A DNA stretch of 64,000 nt, taken from Saccostrea cucullata (lineage: Eukaryota). The stretch is taken from positions 62,001 through 126,000 of the forward strand of contig NW_026930741.1 in NCBI RefSeq assembly GCF_032062105.1, given 5' to 3'. The stretch's first letter is position 1; each line of letters starts with the position of its first letter. The translations under genes and the position numbers were made by a program. Below, piece by piece: positions 1 to 36,300 of the stretch. The notes beneath the pieces are model-generated. The model saw only the letters and a program-made list of their open reading frames with translations. It was not told the origin of the DNA and did no database searches.

Positions 1-5
1 TTCAG

Positions 6-3000
6 AGAGTGATATGTCAGGATCAAAAGATTTTAATCGCCGTGGAACACAAAGGGATTGGGAGAAGCTGGAAGAAAGGTCAGGTGGTGATGGGCAGTCC
101 GAAATGGGACTGCACCCTTAACACGTTACCAGGGGGTTCGTCAAAACAGAGAGGGGTCTACGCCAAAATTAAGGAAATATTCTTCCCAACGGAAACCGGA
201 GTAGTCCTTCACACCCAGTCGGTTAGGTAAGGGTTCTTTATTCTGAAAAATAGAAAAAAAGGACATAATTTTAAATCTGAGAAATTGAAATATTAAACTT
301 TTTCAGAGCCTTCGATGTGATAGACGAAGCGGACATTAAGTTCCGCTATACTCCTGGAAACAGTGCATCTCATCCACCAGAAACGCGGAGAAGACATCGC
401 CGATACATCGCCAATGTACTGTCTGAACTCCTGGGAAACATCACGTGGCAGTACAGTGACACGACTTCTATTCCGTGGAATAAAGACGACTCTAGGGCGA
501 TTGGATCGTTTGGTTTAGCAATTGGAGAAAACGACACAGACTACCGTTATACTGAGAACGTAACAGATAGTGAAGTCATGAGCTTCGTCTGCGAGGACTG
601 CAGTGGAACATCCCACATGTCGTATGAATTGTAAGTGCCAAACTTGACAGTATCTAGCACGCTTGCAATGTACAAAACATGTATACATTTATGACAAATT
701 GTGTTAATTTTCCAGTGACTTAATCATAAAGAAGAATGCCATGAATGAACCAGAGATTCATCGCTACCTCAACAAGGTTTGTCATGATTTTATCTCAAAT
801 TTCTACTTTCATGCATGAAATTGTTAAAAGAGTAAATCAAAATTGTTTCATAATTGATTTGTTATAGCTTGAATCAAATACTACAATGAATTTGAAAACA
901 AGTTTCCAGACTTCAAAAGATATCAAGTTTGAGTTGCATAAAGAAATGGAAGAATTACGTGTTCCACCGACAATGCTGTTTTCGGTGCCTCTTGCGCATG
1001 TGCGAAATCTCCCGCCAGTGATGCTGACGGTGAAATATACGGGATCTACTTATGTTGACTTGCAAGTTGACACAAGATCAGCCGTTACTATGGAAACGGA
1101 CATTAAAGTTGGAGGAAAATATTCTTTTGGCAAGTCTGCTATAATTTCAAATTCTACTCATTTCGAATAATGGAAGTTATATTCTTAAAATATAAACCAT
1201 AAGAACAATCTTACATGTAATTAGAGTAAATTAAACATCCTTTTGTTCTTTTAGTTCATGAATACAGTGGAACTTCGTCTCTAGGAGGAGACGTTGTACC
1301 ACACAACTGGACGTCTACCACCGATCGCAATACTGTAAACAGCGACAAAGACATGTCCGTCAACATATCCGTGTATCAGCAGGTCGGGGCACATTTTTTT
1401 CTGTTAATCCACTCAGTAGATTTTTTAATACTTGATTCTGCTCATTCATGATTATAAGAGTATTTTCTTATTTTTTGACATTTTAGATTTTATTTAACAC
1501 AACAATTGGGTGGTTTGCTCGGGACATGGAGATTGATTTTTCACCTCCAATAAACTATAGGTAAAAAATAAATCTGCACTTCATTTATATACTCGGACAT
1601 TAACAAAAATGTATAAAAAAGTAATCTTTTTCTTGGATTTTTCTTTGAAAGATTGAAACCGACTATTCGCGGTAAATCTGCCGTTAATGACGTCCAGCGG
1701 TGCACCACGAAATCAGCCGACCTTGGTGGAGAGTTCAATGTTACAGAGGCCAGACTCACGGTGGAGGCCTTCGGAGTGTCGATATGGTATAACCCCGAAA
1801 AGGAGACACATCTAGTCTAACAATTTTAAATGAAATATTTTAAGATATATCATTTGTACATACCTTGATTAAAAATACACATGTAAAATACGTATTTTTT
1901 TATTCCTTTTTTAGGAATAGTCTAATTGCAAAGGGCTTCAATAAGAAAGTGAATTTTGAGAATGAAACTTTGTATCAGAAATGTTCCGCGGATTGTCCAA
2001 CATCAACAAAGATATCTTTATACGACGGACTAACAATGTCGGATGTTGTAGGAAATCCCAGAATGTCGATCAGGAGAAAAGATCCCGACTTCAGAATGTG
2101 AGTACGATGTGCAATACTTCCTAATCATTTTAAAATATATCAGTAGATCTCTAGCTTGTTGGTCTTAAGTAATTGGTATGGAGAACCAGAGAGCTACAGT
2201 GCCACCTGTTAATTACGCTCGATTCTGGATTTATTTCTCCAACTTACCTCAGCTTTACAAAAAGCTTAATTTCGGAAAATTCTTTAAACCTTTATTATCC
2301 ACTCTCGCAGCTGACATTTGCATGGAGCGCGTTGCACAGAGCTATCTTTCTATACAAATTGGCTGTATAAATAGGCGAAGTTTGTAGTCGTTTGAGATGG
2401 CGTTTTTTTTATTGGGTGGCATAGCGGCTCTCCAATCTGTTGATTTTTTTCATAGAGGTACAGTTCTGCATTCTAATAACTCCTTTCTGATTTCATTTTA
2501 TTTTCTAGTTTGACACAGATGTGGGGAGACAACGTCCTGTTTTCGTCTGAGGAGGCGAACTTTTCCTCCTGGTGCGGGACCCCTGGTCGTCCCTGCGGAA
2601 GTTGTGTTTATCAGGGCGCCGACGACATTGACCAGGAGTGTGCTGACCGTCTGATGGTTCCAAAACTAGCTACAAAAATCAGCCTTCTAGGGAAATATGT
2701 ATCTGCAGAATGGCCAGATAGTAAGTTTATTAAATACCTTTTTAAAACCGACTTGATACGATGTCAAAGATTACGCTCAGTATTTGATTACTTTTGCACA
2801 GTTAATATTGTACAAATCTATAAAGTTTACCAAAGCAATCTTTTTCCCTTTACAATTTGCCCATCATCCGTTTATATCCGACTCAGGTCATTGCTGTGAA
2901 ACTTATTTCAAAGCTTTATGCCATTTACAATTTTTATTTTCATTAATTTCAGAAAAACTGGTAGTTGTTGAAGCTTGGGATGAACCTACGTCGTCACATC

Positions 3001-6000
3001 CACACGGAAAACATGGCGATAAAAGCTTGTACTATGAGGGAAAAGCTGCTCAACTTGCTATAACTTACGCCAACAACAACTTTTCAGTTCCTCCGCCTGT
3101 TATTAAAGATGATAAAGATAATAAGCGCCTTGAACAAATGGCAGTATGCTCAGGCTTTCAATATGTGTCAAAGGTGAAACTAGAAGCAGGCATAGAGGTT
3201 GCAGTGGGTGATAAACAGACTCCATCAAGGGAAGTTAAGAGGACAAAGAAAGTTTCTCTTAGTGGCAAAGACGCGGCGGATAAAGAAGCCATGGTCAACG
3301 CAATGAAACGCCTTGGTTTGTAATTTATTCTGAAAATGATTACATGTATTTGTATTTGGCATATGATTTGTACTTATAATCCTTGCATTATCAATTTTAG
3401 AGTCTATATTGCCTGGAAAGAAGTGTCCTAAATTTGACGTGGTGAAGCTTGGACGTGGGGAATCTTTTCCTTCTAATTATCTTGGCGAGGTGGAGGCTGC
3501 CGTCGGCCCTGCTTTAGGACAAATTCATCGAGAGAACTCCGAGGAAATGAACAAGTAGGTTTCTCACAGAGAAACAAATAAAGGACAACTTATATCGTGA
3601 GTACTAAATTTAACTTTCTACCTTTGCTTTAGATTGTATGAATATCAGTTTGACGATTTCGAGTTCCTACATGAAAGACGAGAAAATCAAAGCAATGACC
3701 AATGTGGAACAATGAGAAAGTGCCAGGATGGAAGCTTTTCTAATGCAGACGACCCTTGGAGCTGGAGTGCCAATCGAGTTATGGCCCCAAGACTTGCATT
3801 TCGCATGAGAAGATTAGCCTTGATAGCAAAAGATGAGTTGCAGGGTGAGCATATGGTTGTGTCTTGACATTTCCTATTGTGAAAAAACAAAAAACAAAAT
3901 ATCACCAGCAATTTTATAACCTTATTAATGTATTGTAGGATTGAACGTCACCGTGGAGAGGGCATTTGCAGATAAAGTGGATCGAGGAGAGTCCGAACTG
4001 TTTCTTGAAGGAAGGCAAGTCATTTGAATGGTTTGCATTTAAGAAAGAGGGGAGAATTCTTTGACCAATAAAGGCATTGATGATTTCTATTTTTCAGGGG
4101 AGCACGACTAACAGTTAAAGAAAACCCTAATGTTAGCATTCCTATTCTTGGGCATGCTGCGATATGTGCTGGTTTTGATTTTGTTCGCAATATCGATAAT
4201 GCAGCAATAGAGGTATTTGTAAAACTACAGGATGGGTTTAGAACCACTCTGATTCCTTATCCCAGTGGTGACGTGCTTATTGCCGTTGCTCCCCCTTCAT
4301 CAGAGGAAGATGAGTATTCCTACAGTGCAGAATTTGACCACGAGAATAAGAAACCTCTCTTAGTAGATGGTGCAAGAGAAGAGATAAAACTGTCCAAACA
4401 TTTCAAATTAGCTGATTTTAAATTTGAAGGTCATCGTTTCCTGCGCATTGACCCCTCTCTCGTCGAATGTTTAGATCTGACACAGCAGGACTTTAGAGGA
4501 AAAATACAAGTTCTCACTGGATATAGACCAAAATCTGCTAACGAACAAGAGGTTGGATGGAGTAGGCGACAATTAGCTAGATTCCAGATGGGTCAAGCAG
4601 CTGAAATAATGTCGAGCAGTGAGGATGAAGTCCTATCCTTGGCTAAAATGTTGATGGTTACGTGCACCCCGTTCCTCCGTCTTCAGCGAAGAGGACTAGG
4701 TATCCATGTAAAGCAAAATGAAGAAATCGGACGAATTAGCATCTATGTTGATCTTTATCCTCTCCGTGACGATAATAGAGTTATTGATTTGAAGATAAAA
4801 TGTCCGGTTAACAAAGAAACAGAGTGCATGTGGAACGAGCTTAAGTTGTACTGGTCAGAAATAACGAAGGGTGGTCCAGGTATCATACCATATGATGTCA
4901 AGAGTGCGTGTAAAAAGCCTGACCTCAAAAAGAAAACTTATCTCAACTTTAATCTGAACAGACCAGGGTAATATTTATTGAAAATAAATGGATATTAATA
5001 AAAAAAAATTAAACTAACATTTGTCTGGAGTAGCTATATACCAGATAGATAGAAATTCATTGATATTTGTTGATCGGTACTTTTAATTTCATTTCTTGCA
5101 GATTCTGCTTACAATTCCATGATATTAAGTTCTGCCAGAACTCTACCAAGGCCCGAAAAGAACTCGCGGAGGATCTCCTGAAACAATTACAGAGTGTGGC
5201 GGGAACTGATCGGCTGGACATAGCAACAACTCGAGAACAGATTAGACAGTGTATCGTCACTGGCTGTGGGGGATGTTCAGGATCGGGTAAAGAAACAATA
5301 AAGAAGTATCTGTCAGTTATTATCGCGACTCCGAACATGTGTTAAGGTGTTATTAACTAATATATACTTAAGAAACATTCGATTAAATTACAGAAGAACA
5401 AGGGAGAAATATATCAGTAATCTATCTTTTCAGTGAAAATCATGAAGCATTTTTTTCATTCAAGTTTGCTAAATTCAAAAACTGAACTTTTAAAACCATT
5501 AAAACATTAAAATTTGAAAAGAAAAAAACATTGAAAATGAAAACATAGGTTGCTTTTCGATATCAAAGAGTCCTTAAACTTTTAATGATGTTGGAAATTC
5601 TCTGTTTTGAGGAACTACTCTGCTACCTATATCTTAGTCTTTATTAACTAACTTTAGGAAAGAAGTGGGATGGGAAGGTAAGAGCATGTTCAGAACTCGT
5701 GGATAACTTTATGAAGCATGCAAGTATACCACTGATCAAGCCGACAGAGAGCATGTCCTTTTTTAACCCGGATAATGTTGACTCAGCTGCACATGCGTAT
5801 GCCTGTAAGAAAGATGGAACCAAATGTCAAGAGACCGTACAACTATACTCGATATTCCGTAAGTTGGCATTGGAACGAGTTAACACTTCTAGCAACTTAT
5901 CATTACTTCTTATTTTTAATTCATTTTATCCTCCAGGGCACTTGATCCCACCTCTGATTTTTCGGAGATCCGTGTTTGCTCTGCTCCTATTTTGTATTGT

Positions 6001-6688
6001 GTTATGGATTTTGAGATTGAATACTGTTCGTTATCTCCATATCCTTCATCCAACTCATGTTTACATTTACATTTATTTTTCATTTAAAAGAAACTTTACT
6101 TGCGAAAACCTACAAACCGAATCCTAACACGAGTATCGAGGAGGAGGTATTTGGTGCCACAGACAATCCTAGCCCTCTTCTACAGATCGTGGAACAGGAG
6201 ATCGCCATGAATGTCTCGGGAAATGTGTCAGTTGTAATAGACCGCTACAAAGATATTTCTGCTCTTCGGAGTGTTCTCAAGGTAACAGTCTGGTCCTGAG
6301 AGATATCTAACCGTATTTTTGTCCATATCATAACGTATTTTAAGAATTTCATACGATAGAAATTTTAAAAAAAGTGTTTGTTTGGATGCAAATAATCTAT
6401 ATTTCAATTATGAAGGTTTTGATGATCCACAACCGGAAAGTCAATTTTGTAAACTTCCACGTTATGCACGGCGTGAATCCTGACAAGATCGTGACCACTC
6501 TACAACGGAAGCTGGAGACTTGGTCTGGTTTGTCCTGTCCCAAATGGAGCAGGTTCGCCGCGGCTCCTTTCACTATTGAGATTGTATCCAAGGAAAGAAA
6601 GAAAAGAAGTATTGAGGACAGCAGGCAGCGGAACGAGGCTCGGAAACGAAAACGAGACTGGGAACGGGACTGGATATTGCAAACTTAG
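6..6688 (+). CDS. 5'-incomplete multi-exon gene: beta-rich N-terminal region, two Hedge-like domains, peptidase M15A-like domain, Cys-rich C-terminus (uncharacterised Hedgehog/DD-peptidase fold protein)
   Basis: Approximate exons joined by eye: 6-226, 307-630, 716-776, 867-~1130, 1255-1382, 1488-1560, 1652-~1787, 1915-~2097, 2509-2720, 2953-~3315, 3401-3554, 3633-3844, 3939-4014, 4098-4967, 5102-~5286, 5658-5858, 6091-6281, ~6416-6688 (TAG). AATAAA at 6711. Hh-like motifs FSSEE..CADRLM..WPD/KLVVVEAWDE..SLYYEGKA and AGFDFV..IEVFVK. Start codon lies upstream of the window. Confidence 0.85.
2020..3210 (+). other. Hedge-like domain 1 (spliced over three exons)
   Basis: SIRRKDPDFRILTQMWGDNVLFSSEE...CADRLMVPKLATKISLLGKYVSAEWPD..KLVVVEAWDEP..HGDKSLYYEGKAAQL...AVCSGFQYV...IEVAV aligns by eye to Shh [79 protein letters not shown]...AVEAGFDWV...IHCSV. 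Confidence 0.85.
3455..4235 (+). other. Hedge-like domain 2 (more diverged)
   Basis: GESFPSNYLGEVEAAVGPALGQIHREN...SANRVMAPRLAFRMRRLA...LNVTVERAF...SELFLEGRGARL...AICAGFDFVRNIDNAAIEVFVK keeps the same motif order as the Hh-N domain. Confidence 0.75.
4385..4760 (+). other. Peptidase M15A-like (D-Ala-D-Ala carboxypeptidase fold) domain, predicted inactive
   Basis: LSKHFKLADF..IDPSLVECLDLTQQDFRGKIQVLTGYRPKSAN..RFQMGQAAEI..GLGIH..IYVDL matches the M15A pattern LS.hF...EF..ID..L...L..lR...g.pi.i.SGYR...N..S.H..G.AaDi..GiG.Y..fvHvD, with H>F, D>E and H>Y at the metal ligands. Confidence 0.75.
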
Positions 6689-6710
6689 AACTACTTTTTA
6701 TACATGATTT

Positions 6711-6716
6711 AATAAA
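6711..6716 (+). promoter_or_regulatory. Polyadenylation signal of gene 1
   Basis: AATAAA ~22 nt after the stop codon, followed by a T-rich stretch. Confidence 0.6.
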
Positions 6717-8744: not shown

Positions 8745-11700
8745 TAATATTTATATCTATCGTGTAATATATTTTTATAGGCACCTCCAACGTATGGTGG
8801 TGGTTGGGAAGGGGTTGTTGTCTGATTTTATTAAAAAGAGAATAGATTATTATTTTATTTTACTTACAAATTAACAAAACCCCCACAAAATTGAAATTTA
8901 AAACAGATTCCAGTGAGCATTTTAATATTTATTTTGTCTTACTTTTGATAATGTTACACTTATTAGCTTGAACATTGTAATAATTTTTCAGATTTGCAAG
9001 ACACTGTAATCAAAATTGGCTCTGAGGCTCCATCATAAGGCCGAGTTGTTAGGTTCTGTATTAGGATGCTACTTTGTACATGTATTCTAGGGGTATCAAA
9101 GAGAGGAAGTTACCTTATGCGTAGAATAAATACAGCACTTTTAAAATGTCTCGCACCGAATTTCCCTATTTGATACGAGTTTCTTCGGTACTTCTGGTAA
9201 CATGTGTTGCTGAACCCTCTTTCTTTCTACGTCGTAAAATTAATTTTCTATATAATTGAAGCGTCCTCTTACTGCACATGAATGCAATGAAAATAAATAC
9301 ACCTTGTAGACTGTTAATTGCGCCAACCACATCGGAGAACCCCGAATCTTCTAGAAAGCCGTCCAGAATCTGTAACAACCATGTTGCTCCGGTTATTGTG
9401 AGTAAGCGCGCAAATATGGAGAACTCATTTGTCGTTGCTTTATTCTTGCGGACTTTGGGGGATCGAATTATTGTGGACAAGGTTTTGATAAAGAAAATTA
9501 AGTTCACTGTACACAGCAACCCAACAGGAAGGAGGAAAGATACGATCAAGTGTAGGCTTTCATCTATAAAGCATTTTACTTTTCCGTATCCGATATCATT
9601 ATGTTTTGCCACCGACACTGCTATGTTGCTTGAAACAACCACCATCGGGGTAACAAAGATATAAACTGAATATTTACCCAAGATGCACCATTTGTTAGCT
9701 TGGTTGTGCAGAGCAAATTTTGAGTGGAATACTCGATACAAATGAAAGCTACATATGTTCATAGAAAAGAATGAACTAAGCCACAGGTAGTGGGTAATTA
9801 TTCCATATACAAAACATCCCTTAGTATTGACCTCATTACCTTTGCGTATAAGGATGAAAACGTCTGTCGCGAACAAAACAGCAATAAGAATCATAATAGT
9901 TCCTCCTGGCAATGTCCGGAGCTCCTGGAAGATACAGTAGGTGCAAAACGTAATCAATAGAAAAATACAGGACAGCGTCTGGAAGGCAAATTCTATAGTG
10001 GAATCCTGTGAAATCTCCTTCAGAGTAGATTTGTAAGTCGTTCTTGTGTCATCATAAATCTGACGCAACGTAGAGACACATACTCTTGCTGGGCCTTCGG
10101 GCAAAATATCAAAATCGTCATCCTCTAAAGTTATGTTGTACATTTTTAGAAGAATATTGTTATTCTCTCCAGTTTTATAAATTTCAAATTCTTGTGGACT
10201 AAACTCTATTTGAGCGCAAACTAAAAGCTTGCTCACTCGAACTTCACGATATTTAGCCCAATCATAAGAAGTATTGACGTAGCTAAAGGAACAAGACCAG
10301 TTAGATTCGGGGGAAGGTACATTTGAAATCATGATGAAACCGGGAATGCTGAAATTGTGCTTGATATACAAGAGATCTAATTCTGTTTGAAGTCTCTGGA
10401 CTGGATTTTCAAAAAATAATTTGAAACTCAAATGCAATTGAAAATAATTTTCCAGAAGAGTTTCTCTATTACAAGGTAAATTAATGTCCGTTATCAGTTC
10501 TCTCACAGAATTTTGTCCAAAGAGAGATTGCAATTTAGAGAATGTAAATCGATGAATATGTGTCAAGATATCCCCAATAGAAGTGTTAAACTGAGTAGAG
10601 CAGTTGAAATAGGCATCCATACGGTACCGGAGATTTCGTGCTTCTCTAAATAGTGGCAAACAAGACTGACCAAGATTCAGAGTTTTTCCAGGATAACATG
10701 TGACGTTTCTGCAGCCTCCCTAAAACAGAAAATGTATAGGCTTTAACAAAATCATTTGGGAATAAAGTATAGTACAAGAACTTGTATATAAGTAAAGCAA
10801 AAGATTGACTTTTGAAACAAACTACAGAAATGCAAATACCATCAATGAGTTTTGTGCTTCCCTACATTGACGTTCACTGGCTTCTTCGGGGCTGTAATTG
10901 TCGTTCGGATATTTATATAAATAATTTAAGGATTTCATAACAGGTCTGAACGGTGAGAAATAATATCGCAAAAGAAAGTCTTTTCTCTCGGATACTTCTG
11001 GGTGTTCGGATCCGTAGCAAATTTTGCTAGAGTCTGTTTTAATTTTCAGAGATTCATTTGTACAAATTTCACAAAAGGTATTCTTGTAAGGATATGTAAA
11101 ATAGATTTTGGGGGAAAAGTTGCACTTTTTAAGGCTGATTTCACTGACTCCAGAGGAACAGTTGTCAACAAAGGCATCAGACCATTCCAGGGGATTGCAT
11201 AACGCACAATAAACATTTTTATAAGCTGTCAGTTGACCATTGTCATTCTCGTGCCACAAAGGCAAGGAACCAGGTGGCATCAATTCACATGCCCAGAGAA
11301 TATCCGGATCTTTATGTGGCCAGTTTCCTGTTTTGTTACATTTGTCTATTATGTTGTCAGATTTCCGGAAACACGTTTTACCCTTGCTATTTTGACAAGA
11401 AGTCACTGAACGAGGAGGGTGATAATATGATTCACATCCTGCAGCTTGTAATGCATTTAGAAAATCCAAAAAAAGTAAGAAATTGGACATGTCTATATAG
11501 AAGGAACAATCTGCTGTGATGTCCCATGGTTTGTGCCATACTAGTTTGGTTGATGGAAACTGGTTGCATTGTAAACAATACATATTTAGATACGGGATAT
11601 CAGATTGATCTGTGACAGGGTGCATTGAAAAAACATCTTCAAATTGTTGATGACATCCTCTTACAATAAATTCTGGTATTTCTTTTCTTCCATAGCACCC

Positions 11701-14700
11701 ACTTGTAACCAGAAGTTCTTCTGCGTTCCGTTGTGCCTCTTTCCTCGATAATTTCTTTTCACTCAGACAAACCGAGGGATTTCTTAGAGGGACATCAGCA
11801 CAACACCTCTGAGATCCGTAAAGACCATCAGTAAAAATGCATTTTGGGTCACATGAACAATCACTTTCGAAAGAAGAAAACAGGTTTGGAATACCATAGT
11901 TTCCACAAGTGTTCATGTTACCTTCTAGAGAAATTCTTTTGAATACAAGGTTTGTTATGTTTGGAGACTGGGTAACTGCATCTTTTGTGGTTTCGTTAGA
12001 CCTCTCCTTAAAATCCGCTTGCTCACCATTGATTTTAGTTTGGAAGAAGTCCTCATCAAAGTTAAAAATGTTTATTTCATAATGAAAGGTTGTAGATACT
12101 TCGGTATTTGTAATATCACCAATTTTTGTCTTTATTTCTGCGTCGACATCAAGAAAATTTGACTTGAATCGTACAGGTTTATTGCATGAAAAACAGAATA
12201 CATTTTTATACGGAATTGAACCCGGGTTAGTGTCATTGCTTAGACATGCTCCTTCATGTGTTGGATCGTATTCATCCCACTTACCTGTGACATTACATCG
12301 ACCAATCACATTCTCTGTATAGATAGGAGGGTTGCAGATTTTGCAGAACATGTTTTTATACATCTTGTCCTTATTGATATACCTTGATTCGCAACCTCTT
12401 TTAATATCGTAGTCAAATGTTTTCCAGCTTCCGGTTTTATTGCAAGAGTCAAAGTGCACTTGTACTTGCATATCTTGTGTACACTTGTAGTTGATCTCTT
12501 CTTGCGGAGGATATGACAATATGTTACACCGATTCATTTTCCCCTTTTCTATCAATTCTTCGTACGAAGAAAAGAAGTTTATGTCTAAGAACTCGTCACA
12601 GACAATACTTAATGGCCAGGGATCGTACTGGAAATCATTATTGCAGTCAGCACAGTAACGGTTAAGGTACGCCAGGGGGGTGTTCTGACTGGTCACAGGA
12701 GGAAAGAGAATTTTCTCGGTAGAACTCGAATCACCTTCACATTTCCGTTTTGTCTCTTCGACTGTAGTTTTGGGACAGGAATCGACCACAAGAAAGGTAG
12801 AACTTCCGTCGTAGTATAATGATTCATTTAGAATGGCAGCAGATGTGCAGATAGGCTCTGGATAGGAGAAGTACAAATCCGGACAACAGTTGCAATCTGA
12901 CCAGCATTTTTTTTGACAGGAACATGGCGGACAGTTGTGCTGGATATTATCAGCTTGTGTTGTCCATGGAAAGAGAAAATCATGCATAAAGCAAAAGTGA
13001 CTTCGGCCACACAACGTAAAGTATTGCTGAAGAAGGTTCCTGATATTCCAGTCTGATGATGCACCCACTTTAAAGGTTGAAAGTAAAATTATGAACATAA
13101 TTGAAATATTGTAGTCCATGTTGATTGAATGCTAGCAGCTAATATTTTCAGTGAAACTCCGTGAATCTCTTTATTTATAAATATTTTTTTCAAATTGCCT
13201 TACAATTTACAAAGTGTTTCTTATGTTTCTTTTTCAATGGAGTCTTTATTAACTATGAATAAACAAGTGAAGAAGAAAAAGAACGTAAATTGTCTATTAA
13301 ATTGCGTTTTTCCTGTGTATTAATCGTGTGATTATTCAGGCAGCTATACTTTATTTTATAAACAAAGACTTTAGTATTTTTAATATTTAAAAGACCCGAT
13401 ATATATATGGTTAATGTATGAAGGTTTCTTTTTTAAAACTTGTATGAAATATTGACATTTTTGCGAATTTAACTTCAATTTTTGTTTATTGTCCTTTTAA
13501 AAATTCTTTAAGGAGATTGCATGGTTAATAAATTAGCCACTGCATTGACCTGGTTCTTTAACTATTAAGTATTTAAAAGCATGCAAATTTTTCTTCAAAA
13601 TAAATAAAATATAGGAAGACTAAAAATTATTAATCAATTTATAAGTAGAAATATTTAATATTAATTGATTGATTTTATAGTGTTTTTACCTGCCTTTCGA
13701 AAATTTGTTTCACTCATATAGAGGAATACGGGTTAAGGGCTTCATTAAGACCTATATAAGGCAGTCAGTGCCATTGAACAGTTAACAAAGGAAAGCTTAC
13801 TACCTATGTTAACGTCATAGGTTTGACGCGGTGCGGCCGAAGGCAGTCCGAGCACGGGTCTCCTGATCATGAAGGAGTCATTTGGTTAGTTCAGAGGTTT
13901 TTTATTCTATCTTTAATGGCTGGATAACCGACCGATCATATAGAGAAGGGTTTCCTCTCTAAACCCTCCTCCCGCCGCCCGAACATGTGTTCTAGTGTAG
14001 GATTCCTCTTACGCAAAACTTACTCTAAGATGTTCCTAAAGATATCAAACAATGAGTAAAATTATCCTAGTGAGTGGTTCTTCCTATATCCCAAGTAATT
14101 AAAAAAATGGTAGCTATGTTTAGATCAAACTGAGGGGGTTCGTATTAGCTTTACAAAAAGGTTTATTTTCGTATAGCTTAAAGAACTTTGCTTTGTGTAT
14201 TTTAATTTTTCATGCTGATATATATTTATCTATATTTCAGTATCTTGCAGTATGTTTGATTGATTAAATATACCCTTTAATTGAGGTCTTTGAACAGTAC
14301 GTCAAAGATAAAGGAATTTGTGTTTCTTTCAGATTTACTAATCAGGTTTGGCATCCCTCTGTTTTTAGATTTTTTTTCTATTTGCTTGATTTACAGTTTT
14401 CCAATAAGGAGACATATCATTATATGTTTGCTTTTATCTAATTTCTGAGTGTCACAAGGGCCACAATCTTTCAAAAAGATTGTGACACAAAAAGGTACGA
14501 TAATCGATACCTACAAACAATGTTATCAAAGTAGGTTGACATCTCTTTGGTGTTGGAGCCGAAACATTGACTCGGACGAAGAACTTCCTCCTTCGCCCAA
14601 AAATATAATCCCTTAGCAACCTACGAACTTATGCGAGATAGTGTGAAATCAAGGAAGATATCTTCTGGCCATGATGGCGACGTGTTCGTTTTTGCTTTAC

Positions 14701-14705
14701 TGTGG
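8745..14705. repeat. Segmental duplication copy A (intact GPCR, upstream region, stub of LLT-gene exon 1)
   Basis: Aligns by eye to 17270-25135, e.g. 13800-13880 vs 23830-23900, 13920-14130 vs 24330-24565, 14230-14700 vs 24670-25130. Confidence 0.85.
9166..13119 (-). CDS. Class B (secretin/adhesion/Methuselah-like) GPCR with large Cys-rich SMB-like ectodomain; two exons, 13119-10840 and 10719-9166 (~1277 aa)
   Basis: Hydrophobic signal peptide MDYNISIMFIILLSTFKVGAS. SMB-like CPPCSCQKKCWSDCNCCPD and CSCDPKC..RCCAD, plus repeated CNxTGxW...YKNxxCxxCN modules. In-frame phase-0 intron 10839-10720 (ATG|gtattt ... ttttag|GGA). 7TM with class B hallmarks ELRTLPG, THYLWLSSFFSM, GYG..KCFI, LTITGATWL, INSLQGVFIFIAF. 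No GPS motif seen. Confidence 0.9.
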
Positions 14706-14900
14706 GTGGCTTAACTAGAGATTATAGCCGTAGAACGCTGACAGAAATGAAAGTAAAAAACTTTATTTTAGGGGAAACTTGTTTCTTCAAAGGTCTAAGA
14801 ATTTCTTTACTTTTAACATTACTTACTAAAATATCCAAAAAACAAACTTCGAAAGCGTTTTGTTAGGCTTGGAAAACAAGATAGAATTAAGCTATTCGAC

Positions 14901-16815: not shown

Positions 16816-16849
16816 CGAATTGATAACGTGAACTGGACATGAATTGGTA

Positions 16850-18878: not shown

Positions 18879-18938
18879 AGGATGCTACTATGGTTTATAT
18901 GTACAGTGTATTCTAAACTGATTGGAAGAAGAAACTCC

Positions 18939-19110: not shown

Positions 19111-19169
19111 ATTAACTTTATGAATGCGCAGTATAAATAAAGCACTGAATAGTCATTTGTCACACTGAA

Positions 19170-22100: not shown

Positions 22101-23123
22101 TCCTTCCGGTATCTTTAATATCATCAATTTTTGTCTTAATTTCCGCGCTGACATCAAGAAAATTGGAATTGAATTGTGATGGTTTATTGCACGATAAACA
22201 AAATACATTTTTGTACGGAAGTGAACCTTGGTTGGCGTCATTATTTAGACATGCTCTCTCCTGTGTTGGATTATAGTCATCATACATACCTGTGACATTA
22301 CATCGACCAATCACATTCTCTGTATAGATAGGAGGGTTGCAGATTTTACAGAACATGTTTTTATACATCTTGTCATTATTGATATACCTTGATTCGCAGC
22401 TTCGTTTTATATGGGAGTCAAATATTTTCCAGCTTCCGGTTTTATTACAAGAGTCAAAGTACACTTTTTCTTGCATACCTTGTGTACAATTGTAGTTGAT
22501 CTTTTCTTGCGGAGGATATGACAATATGATACATCGATTCTTTTTCCCTTTTTCAATCAATTCATCATAGGAAGAAAAGAAGTTGATGTCTAAGAACTCA
22601 TCACAGACAATATTCAAAGGCCAGGGATCGTAACTGAATTCAAAATTGCAGTCAGTGCAGTAACGGTTTAGGTAGGCCAGGGAGGAGGTTTGCCTGGTCA
22701 CTGGAGGATAGAGAATTTTCTCAATGGAACTCAAATCCCCTTCACATTTCCGTTTTGTTTCCTCGACTGTATTTTTCGGGCAGGAATCGATCATAAGAAA
22801 TGTTGAACTTTCTTTAATGTCTAATGATCTATTAAGAATGGCAGCAGATGTGCAGAATGGCTCTGGATGAGAGAAAATATAAATCCGGGCAACAGTTGCG
22901 ATCTGACCAGCATTTCTTTTGACAGGAACATGGCGGACCGCTATGCGTGATATCATCAGCTTGTGTTGTCCAAGGAAAGATAAAATCATGCATAAAGCAA
23001 AAGTGACTTGGGCCTTACAACGTAAAGTACTGCTGAAGAAGGTTTCCGATATTCCAGTCCGAATACCAATTCTTTAGAGGTTGAAATTAAAATGAGAAAC
23101 AAAACTGAAATATTGTGTTCCAT
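19170..23123 (-). pseudogene. Pseudogenised paralogue of the 9166-13119 GPCR
   Basis: Collinear with the intact gene from ATG at 23123 but broken into at least 7 ORF fragments. Donor GT changed to AT (~20858), acceptor AG lost (~20747), 28-bp frameshifting duplication at ~19514-19569, and several 1-bp indels. Confidence 0.85.
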
Positions 23124-25101: not shown

Positions 25102-27310
25102 ATGGCGGCCGGTTCGCTTTTACTTTACCTGTGTCTATGGGTGACCGTGGATGTAACAGGGGGCTACTTTTTCGAGCCCGGCTATACACATCACTACACC
25201 TACTCCTCTACCACGGATACTCTGGGGATGCATAATATCACCACTGTCATAAGGGTAAGCTAATGGCCCGGGGGGATTAAATTGATTAAAAAAAGATGAA
25301 CTTCAGAGTTTTTTTTTTTTAAATGCGCATTTATATTGATTTATTTTTTCAATTACACATAAAAACTGTTAAGTGATTTGAAACTTACAAAAAGTGATTT
25401 CCCTCTTTTTTAAAGTTTCAAATTCGAGATGTCAACCATAGTGACAGCCACACCTTGTACGAGCTGAAAGTGGACTCATTCACCCAGCACTCACAACGAG
25501 GCTACTGTAAGAATTCAATTATTTATACTGTTGTCCAGTTTCAAATTATAATGTCTTTTGACTGGCAGGAATTTAGTTTTTGCTGCTTGCCAATTTGAAT
25601 TGAAAGAGATTAGCTTAAAAAGTCTTCAAAAAGCTTATACACGTTAAAAAAACAAGATGTGATTCAATTATGCCTATGAAATAAATTCTTAAAATTTTCC
25701 TAAACAGAATGCCATTAAATGAAAGGTGATTTCTTTTAGATGCGGATAATCCACTGAAATGGAACCTCAGTAGACAGTGAGTTCATTTTAAAAATATATA
25801 CCATGTATGAAATATAAAACATTGGAAGTAGAGAGTGAGTTCTAAATTTTAAAAATATATACTTTAAAAACGGTAATGAAATATAAAAACATTTTGAAAG
25901 ATCATGAAACGTCTTAAGCTTAAGTCAAAATATTCATGTTGAAATTAAGTCAAGTATATAAAAAAATATATATTTTTTTATTTGTGTGCAAAATTAGAAA
26001 TTTGTTCAATAATAAATAAACATTTCAACGATTAAAAAACTTTAAAACCTTTTGACCTTGGAGATTTATGTATTTTAAAAAAAACTTTAACCTAGGTCAT
26101 AACTTTCAAATGATACGGGCTAGGTCTTTTATACTACATGTATATATATGAAATTCCAGTGAAAAGACCTTTATCATTGGACACAGTTTACTAAAAATAC
26201 ATTGACATTTTTATAATTGATTGACCTTCTTATGATCATCAAAAATGTGACCTCCTTTTTAAAAACAAACTTTGACTTTAACTTCTAAACAAGGTGTCAT
26301 GTTTTTGTTTACATAGGTTGAAATATTAATATATCCTTGTTCAAAGCAGATAATTTCAATTGAAGTAAATTCTAATTCAAGAACTTTGATTTTGAACTTC
26401 ATTTTGTTATAGATATGAAATTTTCTACTTTTGTAAACAAAAACTTTAACTTCATTACATTATAATTTTTAAGTTCGTTTATTAATAAACAAATGGTGTT
26501 TAATTTTTTGCTGATCATTAGATGATGCTTTAGTTAGAAATTGTAAATTGGTTTTAAGAATTCAGTTGAAACCGTGTCCATGCCCCTTTAAATGTGTCAG
26601 CGTAGATGTTCTTCTTCATTTGACAGTGAGCTGTTGATCAAACTACCTGTCTAAATCTTCATCAAAGACTCAAATAACTTTTGTAATCAAAAAGATGGTG
26701 TCTTCCTCTCTGTCTGTCTGTTTATCTGTTTGTCCGCAAAAACTTTAACCTTGCCCATATCTTTTGATTTAGTGGAGCTATCACTTTCATATTTCACATG
26801 TGTATTCCTTTTAAAGACCTTTCTATGTGTACTACCAAATTTGACCTTTGGCCTTGATCTTGGAGTTTGAAACAATTTTACTAAAAAATTCCAAAGTTTT
26901 ACTTTCGCCATAACTTTTGAATGGTTATGACTAGGAAATTCATCCTTCAAATATGTATTATTTGTGTCAAGACCTTTCATTGGATACCAACAATTAAGTT
27001 TGACCTTTTAAGCTAGATGACACCGGACTGGTTCATATTTAGTCTGTTTTTTTTTTAAATTAAAAAAAAACTTAAACGTAGGTCATAACTTTCAAATACT
27101 ATACTATACTATATATATGAAATTCCAGTGAAAAGACCTTTCATTTGATACCAAGAACTTTGACCCTTTTACTTTGACCCTGGAGTTTGACCTCCTTTTT
27201 AAAAACAAACTTTGACTTTAACTTCTGAAGGGTTAGGACTCTTATACTTCACATATTTAATCCTTGTGACAAGACCTTTCATTGGATGTAAAGAACTTTG
27301 ACCCTTTGAT

Positions 27311-27348
<38 letters not shown>

Positions 27349-30300
27349 ACCATAATTTTTGAACCTCCTTTTTCATACATGTAACAAACTTTGACTTTCT
27401 TTAAAATCCTTTGAAGGGTTTGATCTACCTTTAAACAAACTCCAACATATAACTTTTGAAAAGATGCTTGTGACTTATATTTCGATTGAATTTGGATGTA
27501 AAGAACTTTGCGTACCACCAAATCTGATTTGCATTTGAGAAAGTTTAACTTTGCTATGTTACCATACGGGGTATCAGTGTTTCACAAACTCATCTTTTTT
27601 TGTAGTTTTCTGTTTAAGCTAGATGACACCGGACTGGTTCATATTTAGTCTGTTTTTTTTTTTTTAAATTTATGTAATTCTTATGACAAGGGGAGAGAAA
27701 TCCAATCATCTCTGTGTGTGTGCGTGTGTGTGTGTGTCTGTGGGTGAGTGAGTTAGTACTGTGCGCACTGGTAGTAACTTTTTTAAAAATCGGAATCGAT
27801 GTCGAATGCTGTTTTGATTTATATATCCTTTTGGAGGGGAGGTTTCGATTTGATGTGCCCTTGTACAGTTGGGTTGAGCTGAGAAAGTGCGTGGTTAATA
27901 TTTGGACTGATTTGACTGTTTTCTGTTTGATTAGATAGGACAGGACTAATTCATTTTTAGTCTGACTTTTATATTTTGTTTGCGCTTCGGGAGACAAGAC
28001 TTGTTCAAATTCCGTCTAATTTTAGAGTATTTTGTTTGGACTGTGGGACACAGGAGAAATAGGAATATGCCTTGTCTCCTTCATCTTAAACAGAAAAAAC
28101 TATAAAAATCAGACCAAGATGAAACAGTCCCGCTTCCCCTAGTCAGTTTCCGATTGAGATAGACAGGACAGGGCTGTTTCAAATATCTTATTGGTAGTTT
28201 CCTGTTTGAGCCGGGGTGTGGTAAGTTCGAAATTGGTTCATTTTAACTCCGATTATTACAGTTTCCTGTTTGAGCTGGGGGAGACGGGAGTGGTTCATTT
28301 TGTGCATTACCATCCAGAGGATAAAGAGGAGGTCGTCACTGTGAAGAAGGCAATTGTCGGTACAATGTCAGCCCATTTCAAGGTAAGGGATTGGTCGGTA
28401 CAATATCATCTCACTTCAAGGTAGAGGATTGGTCGGTATGATGTCAGCTCACTTTCAGGTAAGGGATTGGTCGGTACAATGCAGCTCACTTCAAGATAAG
28501 AGATTAGTCAGTATATAGAGTCAGCTCCAAGTATGGGATTGGTCGATACAATGTCAGCTCACTTCCAGGTAAGGGATTGGTCTGTACAATGTCAGCTCAC
28601 TTCCAGGTGAGGGTTTGGTCGGTACAATATTAGCTCACTTTCAGGTAAGGGATTGGTCAGTACAATGTCAGCTCACTTCAAGATAAGAGATTAGTCAATA
28701 CAGAGTCAGCTCCAATTAAGGGATTGGTCGGTACATTGTCAGCTCACTTCCAGATAGGGGATTGGTCGGTACAATGTCAGCTCACTTCAAGGTAAGGGAT
28801 TGGTCGGTACAATATCAGCTCACTTCCAGTTATAAGGGATTAGTCGGTACAATGTCAGATAACTTTCAAGTAAGGGATTGGTCTGTACAATGTCAGCTCA
28901 TCTCCAGGTAAAGGATTGATCGGGACAATGGCAGTTAGCTTTGTGAACTTAATTCCATGTAAAATTGTGTTCGTACTTTATCAGGCCAATTAAGGTAAAT
29001 GATTGATCTATACTTTGTCCTTCAACCTCTAAAATATCATTCAGTATTTTATCAGCTCTATTCCTGATCAATTCATTTAAAAATTTCAAATTTCAAATTT
29101 CCTTTCTTTTGCATCGTAAGGTATCAGAAAAAGATCGATGGACATACACTTCAAACGAAATAGATCACGGAGGTACATATTTCATCTTTTCAGATTTCGT
29201 ATTCTAAATGATTAAAATAAGTTTCAAGTTATTTCTCAATTTATGCATGCTTGTAAAATATTTCATGTAAATACCGGTAAAATATTTCAGGACATCTGTT
29301 ACATACTTACGAGGGGCAGAAGACGTCTGAAGGTCACATGTTATCCAGATACCACTATAGCGATGACAATGTCATTCGTACACACAAAAAGGTCAGGTGG
29401 AAAAACACACAGTACACGGCTTTCGGCGATACGTTTCTCTGAAATACTGAAGCATATTTAAGTGATTTTATTCTGTAATTTTTCTTTTGTCATAAACAAT
29501 GCATTATTTGATATTTTTTGGTTATTTGTGTGATTATCTAGGTCCTGCATTACAACAATAACGGCATGATACACAGAATCCATCTGGTGGACAACATAAC
29601 AACATACGACACAAAAGATTCTAGATTCCAGTAAAGTGTCTCTCTTTCCTTTTGTCTTTTCTCTCTCTCCTCTCTCTCAATTTTTACGCTACTTCTTCGA
29701 AATGATTGTATGGGCAACTACTGGAAGTATAATATACCATAGCAAAGTATAGGGAAAGGGAGTAATTTATGGGAGTAAGAGGTACAAAAGGTAGAAATAA
29801 CGAACGGTGATCGATCTCAAAATAACTATAAACAATACAAATATGTGAAAAGAACATGAACAAGAAGTCAGGAGCCCAGTAGTGTCATAAAAGCAATAAT
29901 TTGTAGTCGATATTATTATTTAGAAGAAATAATACAAATTAAAATGGTAAACTGATATAGTATGTCACCTTTGTTGAAGGGCTAACTATAAGATGTCTTT
30001 GAAATATTTTTCAGTAATGGGTTGCATGACAATGGAGCTATAAAGATCTACTCATCAGGAGGTTTGTATAATAACAATTCTACACGTACTTATAGGTACA
30101 CCTCGTTAACTAAAAATAAGGTTCTGATATTTAATTAAAAGTATTGATTAGTTTATTTACAATGACCAACCAACAATTGTTTTCCAGAATTTCCTACCAT
30201 CCAAACAATAGGAGAGACGCATGTCACATTTCAGGAGAAAAAGTAAATTAAAAACAGTGGTCTTACCACTTATTAAGAAAGAAAAATAACTATGATATAA

Positions 30301-33300
30301 ACAAAAATCAATTTTATAATTTTCATTTCGTATACAAATAAACAAAAATCTTCAAGTGACTTTATTTTGTTATGTAGGAAATATAAAGAAGACGGGGTAC
30401 AAGGTGTGATAGCAGCCTTAGTGAAGGACATCTTAACAGTTATAAAGGTCAGCTATCAAATTGAATTTATCCACTCAAAACATACAGGAGTGTTGGGTCA
30501 ACTTGTATCATTTTCATAAATATTTTATTTTTAGAGACCAGAAAAACCTCTAGAGTTGAAGACGATAGAAAAGAACATAGATGCTATGATAGAATGCATA
30601 CATAGATACGACGACAAAAGTAAGTAAATCTTTACATCTTCGATGATGTATCTCCCCGACTTTCCGTGTACGCATTGCAGTAGTGTTTTTGCCTTATATC
30701 GAAGTCTAAGAATTTTTTTTGTTCTTTCTATGGACAAGTTTTACGCTTTAAAAATTGTTGTATCAGGGAACCTGGTTTTGTCCATTGTGATTGAAATTTG
30801 AACTTGAAAAGGTTTTTTAAAATGGCTTAAAGGATAATCAAACCATCTGTTAACATTGCTTACTTTATGATGTTTCACCACAAATGTTTACAAATTGAAA
30901 ACATAATGTGAAACCCTTTGTATTCTGTTCTTTCAGCTGCCGTGGGAAGAACTGAATGTGTCAAGCAGCTTCAGGAGAATGTTACCCGTCTGATTGACTC
31001 AGACTTGATAGCTTTAGCTGAAAAATTCCTCCTTAAAAATGAGTGTGATAGAAATTATACAAGATGCACTGACGAGCGCCATCTGATGATAGATGTTATA
31101 GCACGTGTCGGAAGTGACGTGGCACAACAGATTGTCATAAGACATGTTCTCAATAACAGCGCTGCTAGTGATGAGGAGATGCGCCATGCTCTCATTCATT
31201 CCATAAGTTTTCAAAATCCAGTTTATGTAGGTTTCCTATATAAGGCATCCGATTTCTTTTTACAAAACTAGCAGATTATTCATTATCTAACGTATTCATA
31301 GTGATAAAAAAGATAAATGTGTTTGCTGTGTTTCTTATTTTTTCGATCACATTTTGTCCGCCGTCCGTCCGTCTATTCACAATAGTATACAAAGCATCCT
31401 TGGGTAAAGGGGAATTTAAATTGTTTCAAGTCCCCTCACGATAATCAAGAAAAGACAAAAATAGGGTGGGGTCATTAAAAAATCTTTTTCAAGAACCACT
31501 GGGCCAGAAAAGCTGAAACTTATGTGGAAGCATCCTGGGGTAGTGTATCCAAAATACAAAAAAGTTGATTTAAATGCGTCAATAATAGCAGAGTGCATTC
31601 TAATATATTTCAGGAACTCATCACTGCAGTAAATGCATTATGCTTTTCAAGGAATTTAAAGCTAGGTAACTTGAAGTCTGACATTGTTTTATTTTAAAAA
31701 GTTAAGTTCATTTATAAATTTTATTCTAATGTAAATCATTGTTTTTAATATTAATATTCTATTGTAAAATCATTGTTTTAACATATATTCAGAGCCTAGT
31801 TTTGTCAGTGACACACAAAGGCGTGCATGCCTTACTCTTGGTGCCATTGTGAAAAACCTTCGTCAGAATGGAAACGCTTCGTTGGCTTTACAGCTTGTAC
31901 ATAAGTTGGAGGAAGCTTTAGGGCATCATAATGAAAGTAATATTAAAAAAAAGTGTGATTTAATAATATTCATTCTCCAAATTAAGTAAACTTGTCTTCA
32001 ATAATTCATGTTGTAAAATACAGTTTCAGGCCTAATCGATTCTTGTCTAATAGAAATTATTTTAAAATAACACAGCTGAATTTCAAGACCTGTACAAGCC
32101 CAGGAACCGCCGATCTGCAGAGGAACCACACACAAAAGAAAACAACCACTTACGAAAGAAGAGAATGCTGGTCCATGCTCTAGGTAATGCAGGTCATCCC
32201 AGTTCTGTCCAGCACATAGTGTCGTACATGGAAGCTAACAAAGCCACACCGTCATTGAGGAGAGCAGCCGCTTATGCCCTCAGACATTTTTCTTGTAATG
32301 AGGTAAACTGTAACTTATTAATAAAGTCAACTGTAAATAAAAAATAAACATTTTAACTTAGTTAATTAGAAACACATCTCTTGTTTTAATTTTTAGAGCG
32401 CCAATGCTTTACTGAAGTCGGCTGTGAACGATCTGGAGAATATAGTGAAACAGGCATCATATGAAGTTTATTCTTCTCACCCTGCCGGAAAATCTTTCAC
32501 TCACGAACAAGAAAATATCATTCTAGCGTAAATGCCCTTTCTGTTATTCGCTTTAAATTTGAAAAAAAAATACACTCTCTGTAAACAATGTAAAAAACAT
32601 CAAATATATATAATGCAGGGCCCGGTACTCCTATCCCGTTGTTACGCGGGTCAGACGAGGAACTTTTGCAGACATCCTGAAAGCTCTGAGCTTTGAACTT
32701 GTCCTTCCAAAGGTCGACTGGAAGAAGATCATCGGAAGCAATAAGATTGGGGCATCGTTTGGAATCTTTATGGAAAACTACATCAAACTTAAATTAGGTT
32801 TCTGAAAATTTGCCTTCGAATTAGCTACATAATGAAATATATGTGTAAAGAATATAATATTGATGTTAATTTGTTTTTTCTTTTTCAGCCCCCTTTAGCG
32901 GTTTATTTGACTTAAAAGTTCACGACGAAGCTTGGGCTACTGCAAATTTGGGATTGATCAATCAATTCATAGACATCTTCAGAGTGAAAGTCTGCTACCA
33001 AATAAACTTTCACTACGACTTAAATATTCTAAAGGTAAAATTTTCATATGTTATTAAAATGCATAATTCATAAATACGTAGAAAATCTTAATTTTAAAAT
33101 AATGCATAACAGGGTGTTTTAGTAAATCATATATAATACTAGATAACAAAAATGGCATATAAAAATGTATTTTTATGAAAGATTATTTTTTTCCAAAAAA
33201 AAAAAATTTTAGGTTTTAGAAAAGATTTTAGAACTATAGAGACCGATCTCATGAATTTTGATCCATAACCAGTACAATAATTTATAGATTTATTTAAATG

Positions 33301-36300
33301 ATAAAAAAAATAATTAGGGAAAAAAAATCAAATATTTTTGGATGAATTATCAATTATTATGGGAAGCGGGCGAAAAACAGCATTCAGCACTTAGCCATAA
33401 CAGGGTGGCCTTTGACAGACTTTATCACAATATTGTGGACCCAATAAAGGAAGCAGTAGATCTAATTAGTGACCTCATTGACATGGGAAGGAATCATGTC
33501 TTAGAAAAGATGATCACAGACCTTGTACAACTTCTGAAGGATTTACCTTCATTGATAAAAGAGATGGCGGAAAACGTATGGAAATCGCTGCAGAAGATAA
33601 ACAATTTTGATGGTAACCCTCTGGCAGACCGAGTCAAAAAGTTAATCAACCGTGTTAAAGTTTTCATCGATGACGTCAAAGGTGACATATTAGGATTCTA
33701 TCACGTGAGTTTTCGTTCATTATAATCATTTTACTTTTATCAGGAATCATGTAGACGAAGAGCTGTTTAGTAATAATAAAATAAAAAACCTTAATTCCTG
33801 TTTTAAGCTATTGGAAGGAATTTAAGAAAATTATAAGTAGATTTTAGCTCATTGTAATGGATTATATTTTGATATTCTGAAGTAGCTTTACATGTATATG
33901 CCCTATTCTAATGAATCTATTTATAAATATGAGCTTCTTCAATTTTCTATCCTATTTAATCTTTATAAATTGACATTTAATAACTTTCCTGACAGAGTGT
34001 GGCAGATGCCATCACTGTGTCCTTACCTTTTGTCGGCAAAGAAATAAAGGAAGGGTTTGAACTCATCGGAGATTCCTGGAAATTCTGGGAAAACCCCATA
34101 GCGTCATTTCATGGCATGGAGAACGCACTTCTGAAGTAAGATATATATTTATTATTCGTTTATAAAAACTTTGTGACTGATCATCACTGAGGAATGCTTA
34201 GATTTTAATTATGGTTTATGATAATGTGTTGTGAGTTTTTTTTCAAAAATATGACATTATTAACACTGTTGATATTTTCCCTCTGATTTCCTTAGGTTTA
34301 AACTAGCTGTTATAACTTTCGTAGAAGCAAAAGAGAGAGTAATGGATTCCTTAAACATTTTTAAAGGTAATGATTTTGTTAGTTAAATGTATCAACAGAT
34401 AGTTCTTGAGCCCCGAAATGTACCAGTTGCTGTAACTCATTTTGCAATATTTCAGGTACACGTTAAGATAAAGCAATGAAATATGCGGAGATAACGAACA
34501 GTATTCGAGTTCAAAAGTCCATTAAACATAACAAAATAGGAACAGAGCAAACACGGACCTCCAAAACATCAGAAGTGGGATCAAATGCTATGGAGGAGGG
34601 AGAGCGATAAAATCAAATCAGGAAAAATCATTATCATTTACTCCTCATGTCTAACTTAAGTAAGCTGAATTTTATATGTTACAAATAAAGGGGGACTTCC
34701 ATACTGGTTTCACCCCATTGAAGAAGTTAAAGGCATGATGAACGACGTTATGGACATTATGGGTCTGATCAATGACGAAGTATTCCACTACAAAACAGAT
34801 CCAGCCTCAAATTTTTCCGTGGCCGACATCACGGACGGACTTATGATGTGTGTAAGTACAAACGTTACAAAAGATTCAAATACGGGAACACTTTGATTAG
34901 ATAATGTTCAAAGTAAATTTAAAATTAATTTCCTCAGGAAAACAAAAGGATCATCCATGATCTGGTAAAGGATGCCGTTATGCCTGTTTTAAATCAAACA
35001 CTGGATAGAGTTAAAGAGATTGCCAAACCTTTCTGGGACAAAGTTACAGAAGTAATTGACCTCTTCAAGAGAATCAAGAGTTCTTATGACTTCGTAAGAG
35101 AGGCGTAAGTTTTAGTATTTATAATGTACCTTTCATTAACATAAACTCACTGTCTTCCAACAAAGAAGTTAAGAATAACGAGTGAAATATTTATGGAAAC
35201 AATTATGAATATTACCTTATTACAGCATTAACAAAGGAAAATTCTTTATCCAAAAAATCTTCGGAGCCAAATTTCACAGAAAGTTTCCAAAAACTCCCGG
35301 CCCTTGTGATGTACCTTCATGTGCCTGTGGTGAATACAGGAAGATAAGTAACGGAATGATGGGGATAGATCTGATGATAGACTCCAAGAGTAAAATGGTA
35401 TGTTTATATTGTATTGGTTTTCATATAGATATGTATTAACGCATTAAGTCCGTGCATGGTATATAATTTCGACCGTATCTTATCATTATTCTTCCTCTCG
35501 ACTTATATTTCCTTGTTGCTTTTCAAAATTAAAAATTTAATGCACTATCTGTCATCTTTCAGGACGTACTTAATCCTATGACTGGTCTAGTCTCCTGGTA
35601 CAGCGATACTGAGGTTCTTATCATTCCTCACAGAGTAGACGTCAGCATGTATGAAATTATTGTGTCAAACCTTAAACAAGTAAGCCCAAAAATTCCTAGA
35701 AACAGGAAGAAAAAGTTCTTCCTTGGCGGTCATAAAATTGGCAGGGTTGTTGATAATCTTGAAAATTGCGATTTTAACTTTATCACTGTGTCCATGAGAA
35801 AGAGAGTAGAGAATTCAACAGGTTTGGCAGAGGAAAATTATGAATACATCGATCCTTCTAAATACATAAAGAAGAAAAAACCAAAATCGTTTTGGAAACC
35901 AGTGTGCAAAGAGGCATTTTATCATTACATTGGACAAGTGGCAGACGACCTTGACATGGGAGATGAACCCGAGGAAGACGAAACCGAGACAACAAGAGAA
36001 GTAGACAGCAAGAAAATCAAAGGACCAAAGTTCTTGCATCGACATCATGTGGGAAAGCGGTCCTTAGAAATCAAATATAAGGGGATACGTGATAAAAGAG
36101 CTGTAGAATGCAACGACGAAAACGATAAATCCTTCAAATGCAAACTTAAGAGGTTCGGTACAAAAGTTGGAGAAATGAGAGAATCACTTATACTGAAGAC
36201 GTATGTAATTTATTTTGAATTCAAACAATAGAATGATAATACCTGTAATTGTAAGTATATTAAAAGAAAAAAATTGATATTAAAAAAAAAAAGTAAAGCA

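Follow-up and report, generated by a model that had tools for sequence, protein, structure and literature searches.

What is encoded by a cluster of peptidase-like folds that have lost their zinc ligands, and do the genes that carry them belong together? The question is raised by a 64,000-nucleotide stretch of the oyster Saccostrea cucullata (contig NW_026930741.1, positions 62,001 to 126,000), here called the window, which has no runs of N and is part of a 445-kb contig in a 1.17-Gb genome. Gene 1 encodes a secreted protein with Hedge and M15-like domains, and gene 4 encodes a giant membrane protein with an M23-like domain. A G-protein-coupled receptor (GPCR) lies between them. A first-pass annotation, made from the sequence alone, read this as one sensing system built on all three LAS peptidase families. 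The present analysis gives a different answer. Gene 1 is a member of a long, mollusc-only Hedglet subfamily whose architecture is undescribed within the searchable literature, and gene 1 and gene 4 are an old, co-duplicated mollusc pair whose linkage is conserved across bivalves and gastropods.

Both genes were analysed exon by exon, with database proteins as full-length stand-ins. For gene 1 the stand-in is the O. edulis ortholog XP_048781054.2 (1,434 amino acids). Gene 1 is composed of the following parts.

1..6688, + strand: gene 1, a secreted long-type Hedglet of about 1,430 amino acids; all exons match O. edulis XP_048781054.2
1..2098, + strand: N-terminal region of about 480 amino acids, found only in the long mollusc type
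2510..3221, + strand: Hedge domain 1, zinc triad Y/Q/E, with a Cys-rich insert and five acidic calcium-site positions kept
3632..4242, + strand: Hedge domain 2, zinc triad F/R/E, with one calcium-site acid left
4258..4851, + strand: M15A-derived pseudo-peptidase domain, H/D/H changed to F/E/Y
4880..6600 (start approximate), + strand: domain with the CD38/ADP-ribosyl-cyclase fold, modelled on a paralog, apparently without the catalytic Glu
6608..6688, + strand: conserved C-terminal peptide of about 26 amino acids behind a basic convertase-like site

The exons are about 65-90% identical to the ortholog, the introns are consistent with GT-AG boundaries, and the reading is intact. The signal-peptide exon (L008:9478) precedes the window by about 520 bases. 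The N-terminal region is conserved in snails and cephalopods; it has no Pfam match, and its look-alikes in the ESM Atlas score below 0.9, as was the case for all Atlas feature searches. The Hedge domains are internal, starting near residue 520 and not at the mature N-terminus. Pfam HH_signal matches the O. edulis ortholog twice (1e-13 and 1e-9), and the Hedge-domain profile of the family matches SHH at E=3e-22. The ortholog has no Pfam match to a Hint domain, and its C-terminus has the CD38 fold instead. Gene 1 also has no VWA, cadherin or transmembrane part. The acidic calcium-site positions are those named in the available passages of PMC8052667; the first two in Hedge domain 1 were placed by motif across the Cys-rich insert. 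The basic site and a W-E-x-x-W tail are common to molluscs, amphioxus, starfish and a hemichordate, and the chain is probably cleaved at this site, before the C-terminal peptide.

The M15-like, CD38-like and M23-like assignments rest on profile and fold comparison; Protein Data Bank sequence searches with these pieces gave no meaningful match. The M15-like domain aligns with bacterial M15A proteins that have intact sites (hhalign P=99.7, E=9e-26), and searches with it retrieve M15A proteins of bacteria, some of which also carry a glucosaminidase or lysozyme domain. Its F/E/Y is the commonest state of this domain in the long clade and is mostly conserved there. All three M15A zinc ligands occur together in none of the Hedglet-family domains examined, and the GYR motif still has its groove Arg. 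The Hedge-Hedge-M15A-like order of the first-pass annotation is thus borne out by the HH_signal matches and the hhalign result, while the CD38-fold domain, the N-terminal region and the upstream start had escaped it. Three further proteins (P0055, P0057, P0063), apparently secreted and with intact M15A sites, lie near the M15-like domain of Hedglets in profile; a phage-type lysozyme is joined to one of them, and LDLa and a Hint domain to another.

The last 300 or so residues of gene 1 were modelled on a Saccostrea echinata paralog (P0010:600-901), not on the window's own gene 1, with a pLDDT of 89.5. Two gene 1 paralogs of the Saccostrea genome are nearly identical to S. echinata proteins. Foldseek places the model in the CD38 fold with a probability of 1.0, and in the VIA structure comparison CD38 (Z 11.3), Aplysia cyclase (11.1) and BST-1 (10.6) precede the next match at 8.0. 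Superposition gives a root-mean-square deviation of about 4 Å over roughly 190-200 residues, at an identity of about 12%. CD38, BST-1 and Aplysia cyclase share this fold with the C-terminus of gene 1, but in gene 1 it is fused behind Hedge and M15-like domains. All 21 sequences have Leu or Ile at the putative catalytic-Glu position, and two of them have a Glu one place later. The register of this position was placed by secondary structure and by the CD38 arrangement rather than by a residue alignment. The catalytic Glu has apparently been lost. Conventional CD38-like genes are present elsewhere in the Saccostrea genome, where three PF02267 exon matches are clustered (G000:C13871:368584-410956).

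The CD38-like domain is among the best-conserved parts of the family, from sponge to amphioxus, and in the register used here it retains an aromatic residue, with an acid as well in most members, at positions that resemble the CD38 pocket. It could therefore be the core of gene 1, binding or slowly turning over extracellular NAD+ or ADP-ribose, with the peptidase-like domains as spacers or anchors. This is improbable, as the Leu or Ile found throughout at the catalytic position stands against it, and PMC3482391 gives a terminal Glu as a defining trait of the enzymes with this fold.

Gene 1 belongs to the Hedglets, which were named by Jägers and Roelink in 2021 (PMC8052667; bioRxiv 10.1101/2019.12.17.880039). 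In the passages available, Hedglets are Hint-less, predicted to be non-catalytic, and found in molluscs, echinoderms and amphioxus; the analysis there is confined to a Hedge core of about 105 amino acids, and the distribution is termed enigmatic. Gene 1 likewise has a Hint-less Hedge domain with lost catalytic residues in a mollusc, and its homology to the family extends beyond the Hedge core. Two forms of the family are recognised here, and both contain the Hedge, M15-like and CD38-like core. The short one, of about 920-960 amino acids, has the order M15-like, Hedge, M15-like, CD38-like; it is present in amphioxus, hemichordates, echinoderms and bivalves, and in the sponge Oscarella it follows trypsin and PLAT domains. 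The long form (the N-terminal region and two Hedge domains; about 1,400 amino acids) is a well-supported clade, seen here only from bivalves, gastropods and cephalopods. Gene 1 falls in the long clade, apart from the short-type members of B. floridae, the shared core domains notwithstanding; it differs from them by the doubled Hedge and the N-terminal region. The same B. floridae sequences are on the published Hedglet list, and the published members noted in the available passages are all of the short type. Those passages mention neither the M15-like nor the CD38-like domain, and neither a sponge member nor the gene pairing. Literature searches with the locus identifiers and domain combinations found only the Hedglet mention; subscription journals lay outside these searches.

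Gene 1 was also considered as a hedgehog ortholog, and this was rejected: a canonical hedgehog-type locus exists elsewhere in the Saccostrea genome. Gene 1 shares with Hh and SHH the Hedge fold and the calcium-site acids of Hedge 1, but it has neither Hint nor the zinc triad, and its Hedge domains are internal. The Hedglings of sponges, cnidarians and choanoflagellates also have a Hedge domain with an incomplete zinc site and no Hint. In Hedgling the Hedge domain is joined to cadherin-like, EGF and transmembrane parts, whereas here these are divided between two adjoining genes; the one-chain order of Hedge, VWA, cadherin, EGF and transmembrane parts is not found, and the Hedge of gene 1 is internal and doubled.

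The sponge member is a single transcriptome protein of 2,253 amino acids from Oscarella pearsei (P0039), with the order trypsin, PLAT, M15-like, Hedge, M15-like, CD38-like. Its Hedge retains two of the three zinc ligands. An Oscarella Hedge expressed sequence tag without Hog or VWA is described in PMC2362128, and P0039 may be the same gene. If confirmed, a sponge Hedglet conflicts with the statement, in the available part of PMC8052667, that every Hedglet-bearing animal also has hedgehog. The Saccostrea genome also has a short-type Hedglet (G000:C14000:306052-311289), on a contig without a gene-4 match. In amphioxus, the short Hedglet of Branchiostoma lanceolatum (P0198) is labelled SHH in NCBI and UniRef, and the family thus confuses annotation.

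Gene 4 encodes a giant type I membrane protein. The order of its parts is signal peptide, Vitellogenin_N, helical stretch, M23-like domain, PAN, FN3-like repeats, cadherin-like domain, EGF, transmembrane helix and tail. Vitellogenin_N is the module of large lipid transfer (LLT) proteins.

25102..52582 (end approximate, last exon inferred), + strand: gene 4
25102..32527, + strand: Vitellogenin_N (LLT) module, PF01347 E=4.4e-7 on one exon
35226..35870, + strand: M23/LECT2-like pseudo-peptidase in two exons (35226-35396, and 35562 onward)
39588..47800, + strand: PAN and at least nine FN3/Ig-like repeats (PAN_1 E=3.6e-5, fn3 E=8e-6, repeat motifs)
49523..50500, + strand: cadherin-like/Big_9 domain, two EGF repeats and transmembrane helix

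The gene had been thought to end at 35868; it extends to about 52,582. Its LLT exons match a PF01347 gene of Sinanodonta. Like gene 4, vitellogenin, apolipophorin and MTP have a Vitellogenin_N module at the N-terminus, and they also have basic cleavage sites. These large lipid transfer proteins are soluble carriers, whereas gene 4 continues with M23-like, PAN, FN3, cadherin-like and EGF parts and a membrane anchor. Gene 4, like gene 1, is probably processed at its basic convertase sites. Its introns hold tandem repeats at 28420-28930 and 50700-51800, and the latter repeat family recurs upstream and on other contigs.

The M23-like domain was identified by fold on its second exon, with no sequence-level match; the Pfam M23 profile matched no gene in the Saccostrea genome. 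Folded alone, without the first M23 exon, the second exon reached a pLDDT of 79. The top 27 rows of its VIA comparison are all of the M23/LytM fold (26 M23-fold chains at Z 5.5-7.5; LECT2 6.2), with the first unrelated match at 4.3, and Foldseek also places M23-fold proteins at the top, with weak E-values (about 0.02). The Z scores are modest; given this uniform list of matches, the model makes the M23 call of the first-pass annotation a sound one. In place of HxxxD and HxH the domain has M/D/F-x-T, in a register taken from the motif, and the Asp alone survives. In some gene-4 paralogs one HxH His is still present; none of those examined has the full site. Two gene-4-type M23 exons on other contigs (G000:C3448:6929 and G000:C12379:5671) have identical translations and are possibly uncollapsed haplotypes.

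The fold matches include EnvC, DipM, SpoIIQ and LECT2, in which the M23 fold serves as a protein-binding module without proteolysis. The domain of gene 4 shares their fold and differs in being one part of a giant membrane protein. LECT2 retains its zinc ligands, and the M23-like domain of gene 4 does not.

No His zinc ligand is left in the four peptidase-like domains of the window, and none of them has a complete zinc site, which confirms an early claim on this locus. The loss is not family-wide, as many relatives retain the first Hedge His; among those examined no full site was found. The grouping as three LAS families is of little further use: PMC8052667 treats Hedge and M15A as a single related group, the LAS arrangement itself is lost, and the CD38-like fold is unrelated to peptidoglycan.

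The genome encodes four long-type Hedglets, and each has a gene-4 copy on the same contig, at about 8-72 kb. The paralog loci were read in part. The microsynteny proposed at the outset as a check holds in these paralogs and in four other molluscs.

Window: gene 4 lies 18 kb downstream of gene 1, head-to-tail
Saccostrea contig C20375: less than 8 kb, head-to-head
Saccostrea contig C14078: less than 15 kb, head-to-head
Saccostrea contig C14548: within about 72 kb
Pecten: head-to-head, less than 2 kb
Sinanodonta: head-to-head, a few kb
Haliotis: head-to-tail
Batillaria: FN3-type giants on both sides of the Hedglet

Chance pairing is estimated at about 0.1-0.3% per locus, with the four copies not independent of each other. 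Between C20375 and C14078, gene 1 is 77% and gene 4 is 69% alike, and both are 30-38% alike to the window pair. The sister pairs are thus similarly diverged in both genes, which fits duplication as a unit. The annotated gap of 379 bases in Sinanodonta was discarded as the product of a wrong gene model: the public Hedglet model (L029 10001-11824) has a wrong start and runs over exons 1 and 2 of the LLT gene, which lies on the opposite strand.

Transcription was assessed in sequencing runs. Gene 1 sequence is present in 20 runs, of which four are recorded as RNA-Seq, and two of these four carry spliced gene 4. RNA contigs of a close relative contain 14 splice joints in 33,300-39,200, including the joint between the M23 exons. 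Gene 4 is therefore transcribed and spliced. The expected co-expression of the pair is seen in half of the RNA runs; the contigs show presence only, and co-regulation is neither proved nor excluded by them.

The conservation of the linkage in paralogs, bivalves and gastropods makes a secreted pseudo-enzyme with a membrane LLT/FN3 partner, as first proposed, a reasonable hypothesis. The preferred reading, which is held at about an even chance, is a co-regulated pair of a secreted Hedglet subunit and a gene 4 membrane scaffold. Convertases would cleave both products at basic sites. The Hedglet, once secreted, would act without enzymatic activity, as a subunit or ligand bound to the ectodomain of gene 4; the likeliest contact would be between the Hedge 1 calcium site and the FN3-like repeats. 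Hh binds the FN3 co-receptors CDON, BOC and Ihog, and the FN3-rich neighbour of gene 1 resembles this co-receptor logic. The dead M15, M23 and CD38 folds would have become binding surfaces, and the linkage, often head-to-head, would be retained for co-regulation. Besides the linkage, the five retained calcium-site acids of Hedge 1, the conserved F/E/Y of the M15-like domain and the two RNA runs with both genes speak for this reading.

Several observations weigh against this reading. The orientation of the pair varies (in the window and in Haliotis it is head-to-tail), and the two genes can be as much as about 72 kb apart. Gene-4 copies outnumber gene 1 copies, and short Hedglets have no gene-4-type neighbour at the loci examined. 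The Saccostrea pair contigs are possibly parts of one cluster and so not fully independent. The calcium site is lost in several gene 1 orthologs, and gene 4 contigs are absent from two of the four RNA runs with gene 1, which is weak evidence. No LLT neighbour was found within 10 kb in S. echinata and O. edulis, where a partner may lie further out, and none was seen within 10 kb in Argonauta; these absences are uninformative given the gaps seen in oyster orthologs. The variable arrangement, the unpaired gene-4 copies, the unlinked short Hedglets and the runs with gene 1 only would also fit two independent proteins, linked by an inherited neighbourhood or shared regulatory DNA. This is a possible reading and clearly less probable than the paired one: the pairing has outlasted the split of bivalves and gastropods and duplications that are now 30-38% identical, while other neighbours change.

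A second alternative is that the pair recognises peptidoglycan or microbes and senses them with the grooves of its dead M15 and M23 domains. The nearest outside relatives of the M15-like domain are the bacterial M15A proteins described above, some with glucosaminidase or lysozyme domains, the M23 fold matches cell-wall hydrolases, and the Arg of the GYR groove is kept. An H-type lectin gene also lies upstream of O. edulis gene 1 (L011:5529-5741). On the other side, bulky residues stand in place of the zinc ligands, and neither the CD38-like fold nor the LLT module has a link to peptidoglycan. Microbe recognition is considered unlikely. A frame similar in appearance to the lectin gene is present about 35 kb upstream in the Saccostrea genome (L043:3255-4229).

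The GPCR was the third member of the proposed sensing system. It does lie between the two genes, as two copies and not one, and the copy that faces gene 4 is broken.

9166..13119, - strand: intact Cys-rich secretin-class (7tm_2) GPCR in two exons, PF00002 E=2.8e-15
13911..14715, + strand: dead duplicate of the gene 4 upstream region and first codons, 81% identical to 24325-25133, with a stop after 14 codons
19011..23123, - strand: second copy of the GPCR, in head-to-head orientation to gene 4, frameshifted and interrupted by stops

The intact copy faces only the dead remnant of the first exon of gene 4. A tandem duplication within the window copied the GPCR and the gene 4 upstream region together (82% identity), and this shared region would favour a unit of three genes, with the GPCR as the signalling member. 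The only nearby GPCR among the other loci examined, 9 kb behind the O. edulis ortholog and of the same family, would favour it also, but that copy appears frameshifted. The family has at least 45 related loci in the Saccostrea genome, none of them on the three other pair contigs, and no GPCR is present in the DNA examined at five non-oyster loci. As a conserved member of the pair the GPCR is rejected, since it is found there only in two oysters; the three-gene unit is largely refuted and very improbable, and a later insertion in the oyster lineage is proposed. Only 7tm_2 was matched, with no GPS or GAIN Pfam match on either exon. The GPCR framing of the locus, and the LAS triad with it, should be dropped.

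A broader suggestion is tentative: the long Hedglet and the membrane-anchored LLT-FN3 protein might act in molluscs as a Hedge ligand and its receptor, independently of Patched. Such a system would be built on the Hedge/M15-like/CD38-like cassette, which a sponge already has and which need not have come from hedgehog. The Hedglets gain a domain architecture, a second, mollusc-only subfamily, a sponge member and a linked candidate partner gene, and an orphan family becomes directly testable for binding and co-expression. The architecture also bears on the Hedge domain's emergence from M15A-type peptidases.

Immediately ahead of gene 1 and outside the window (L008:1378-7849) is a gene that by eye resembles the nuclear speckle splicing regulator NSRP1/CCDC55.

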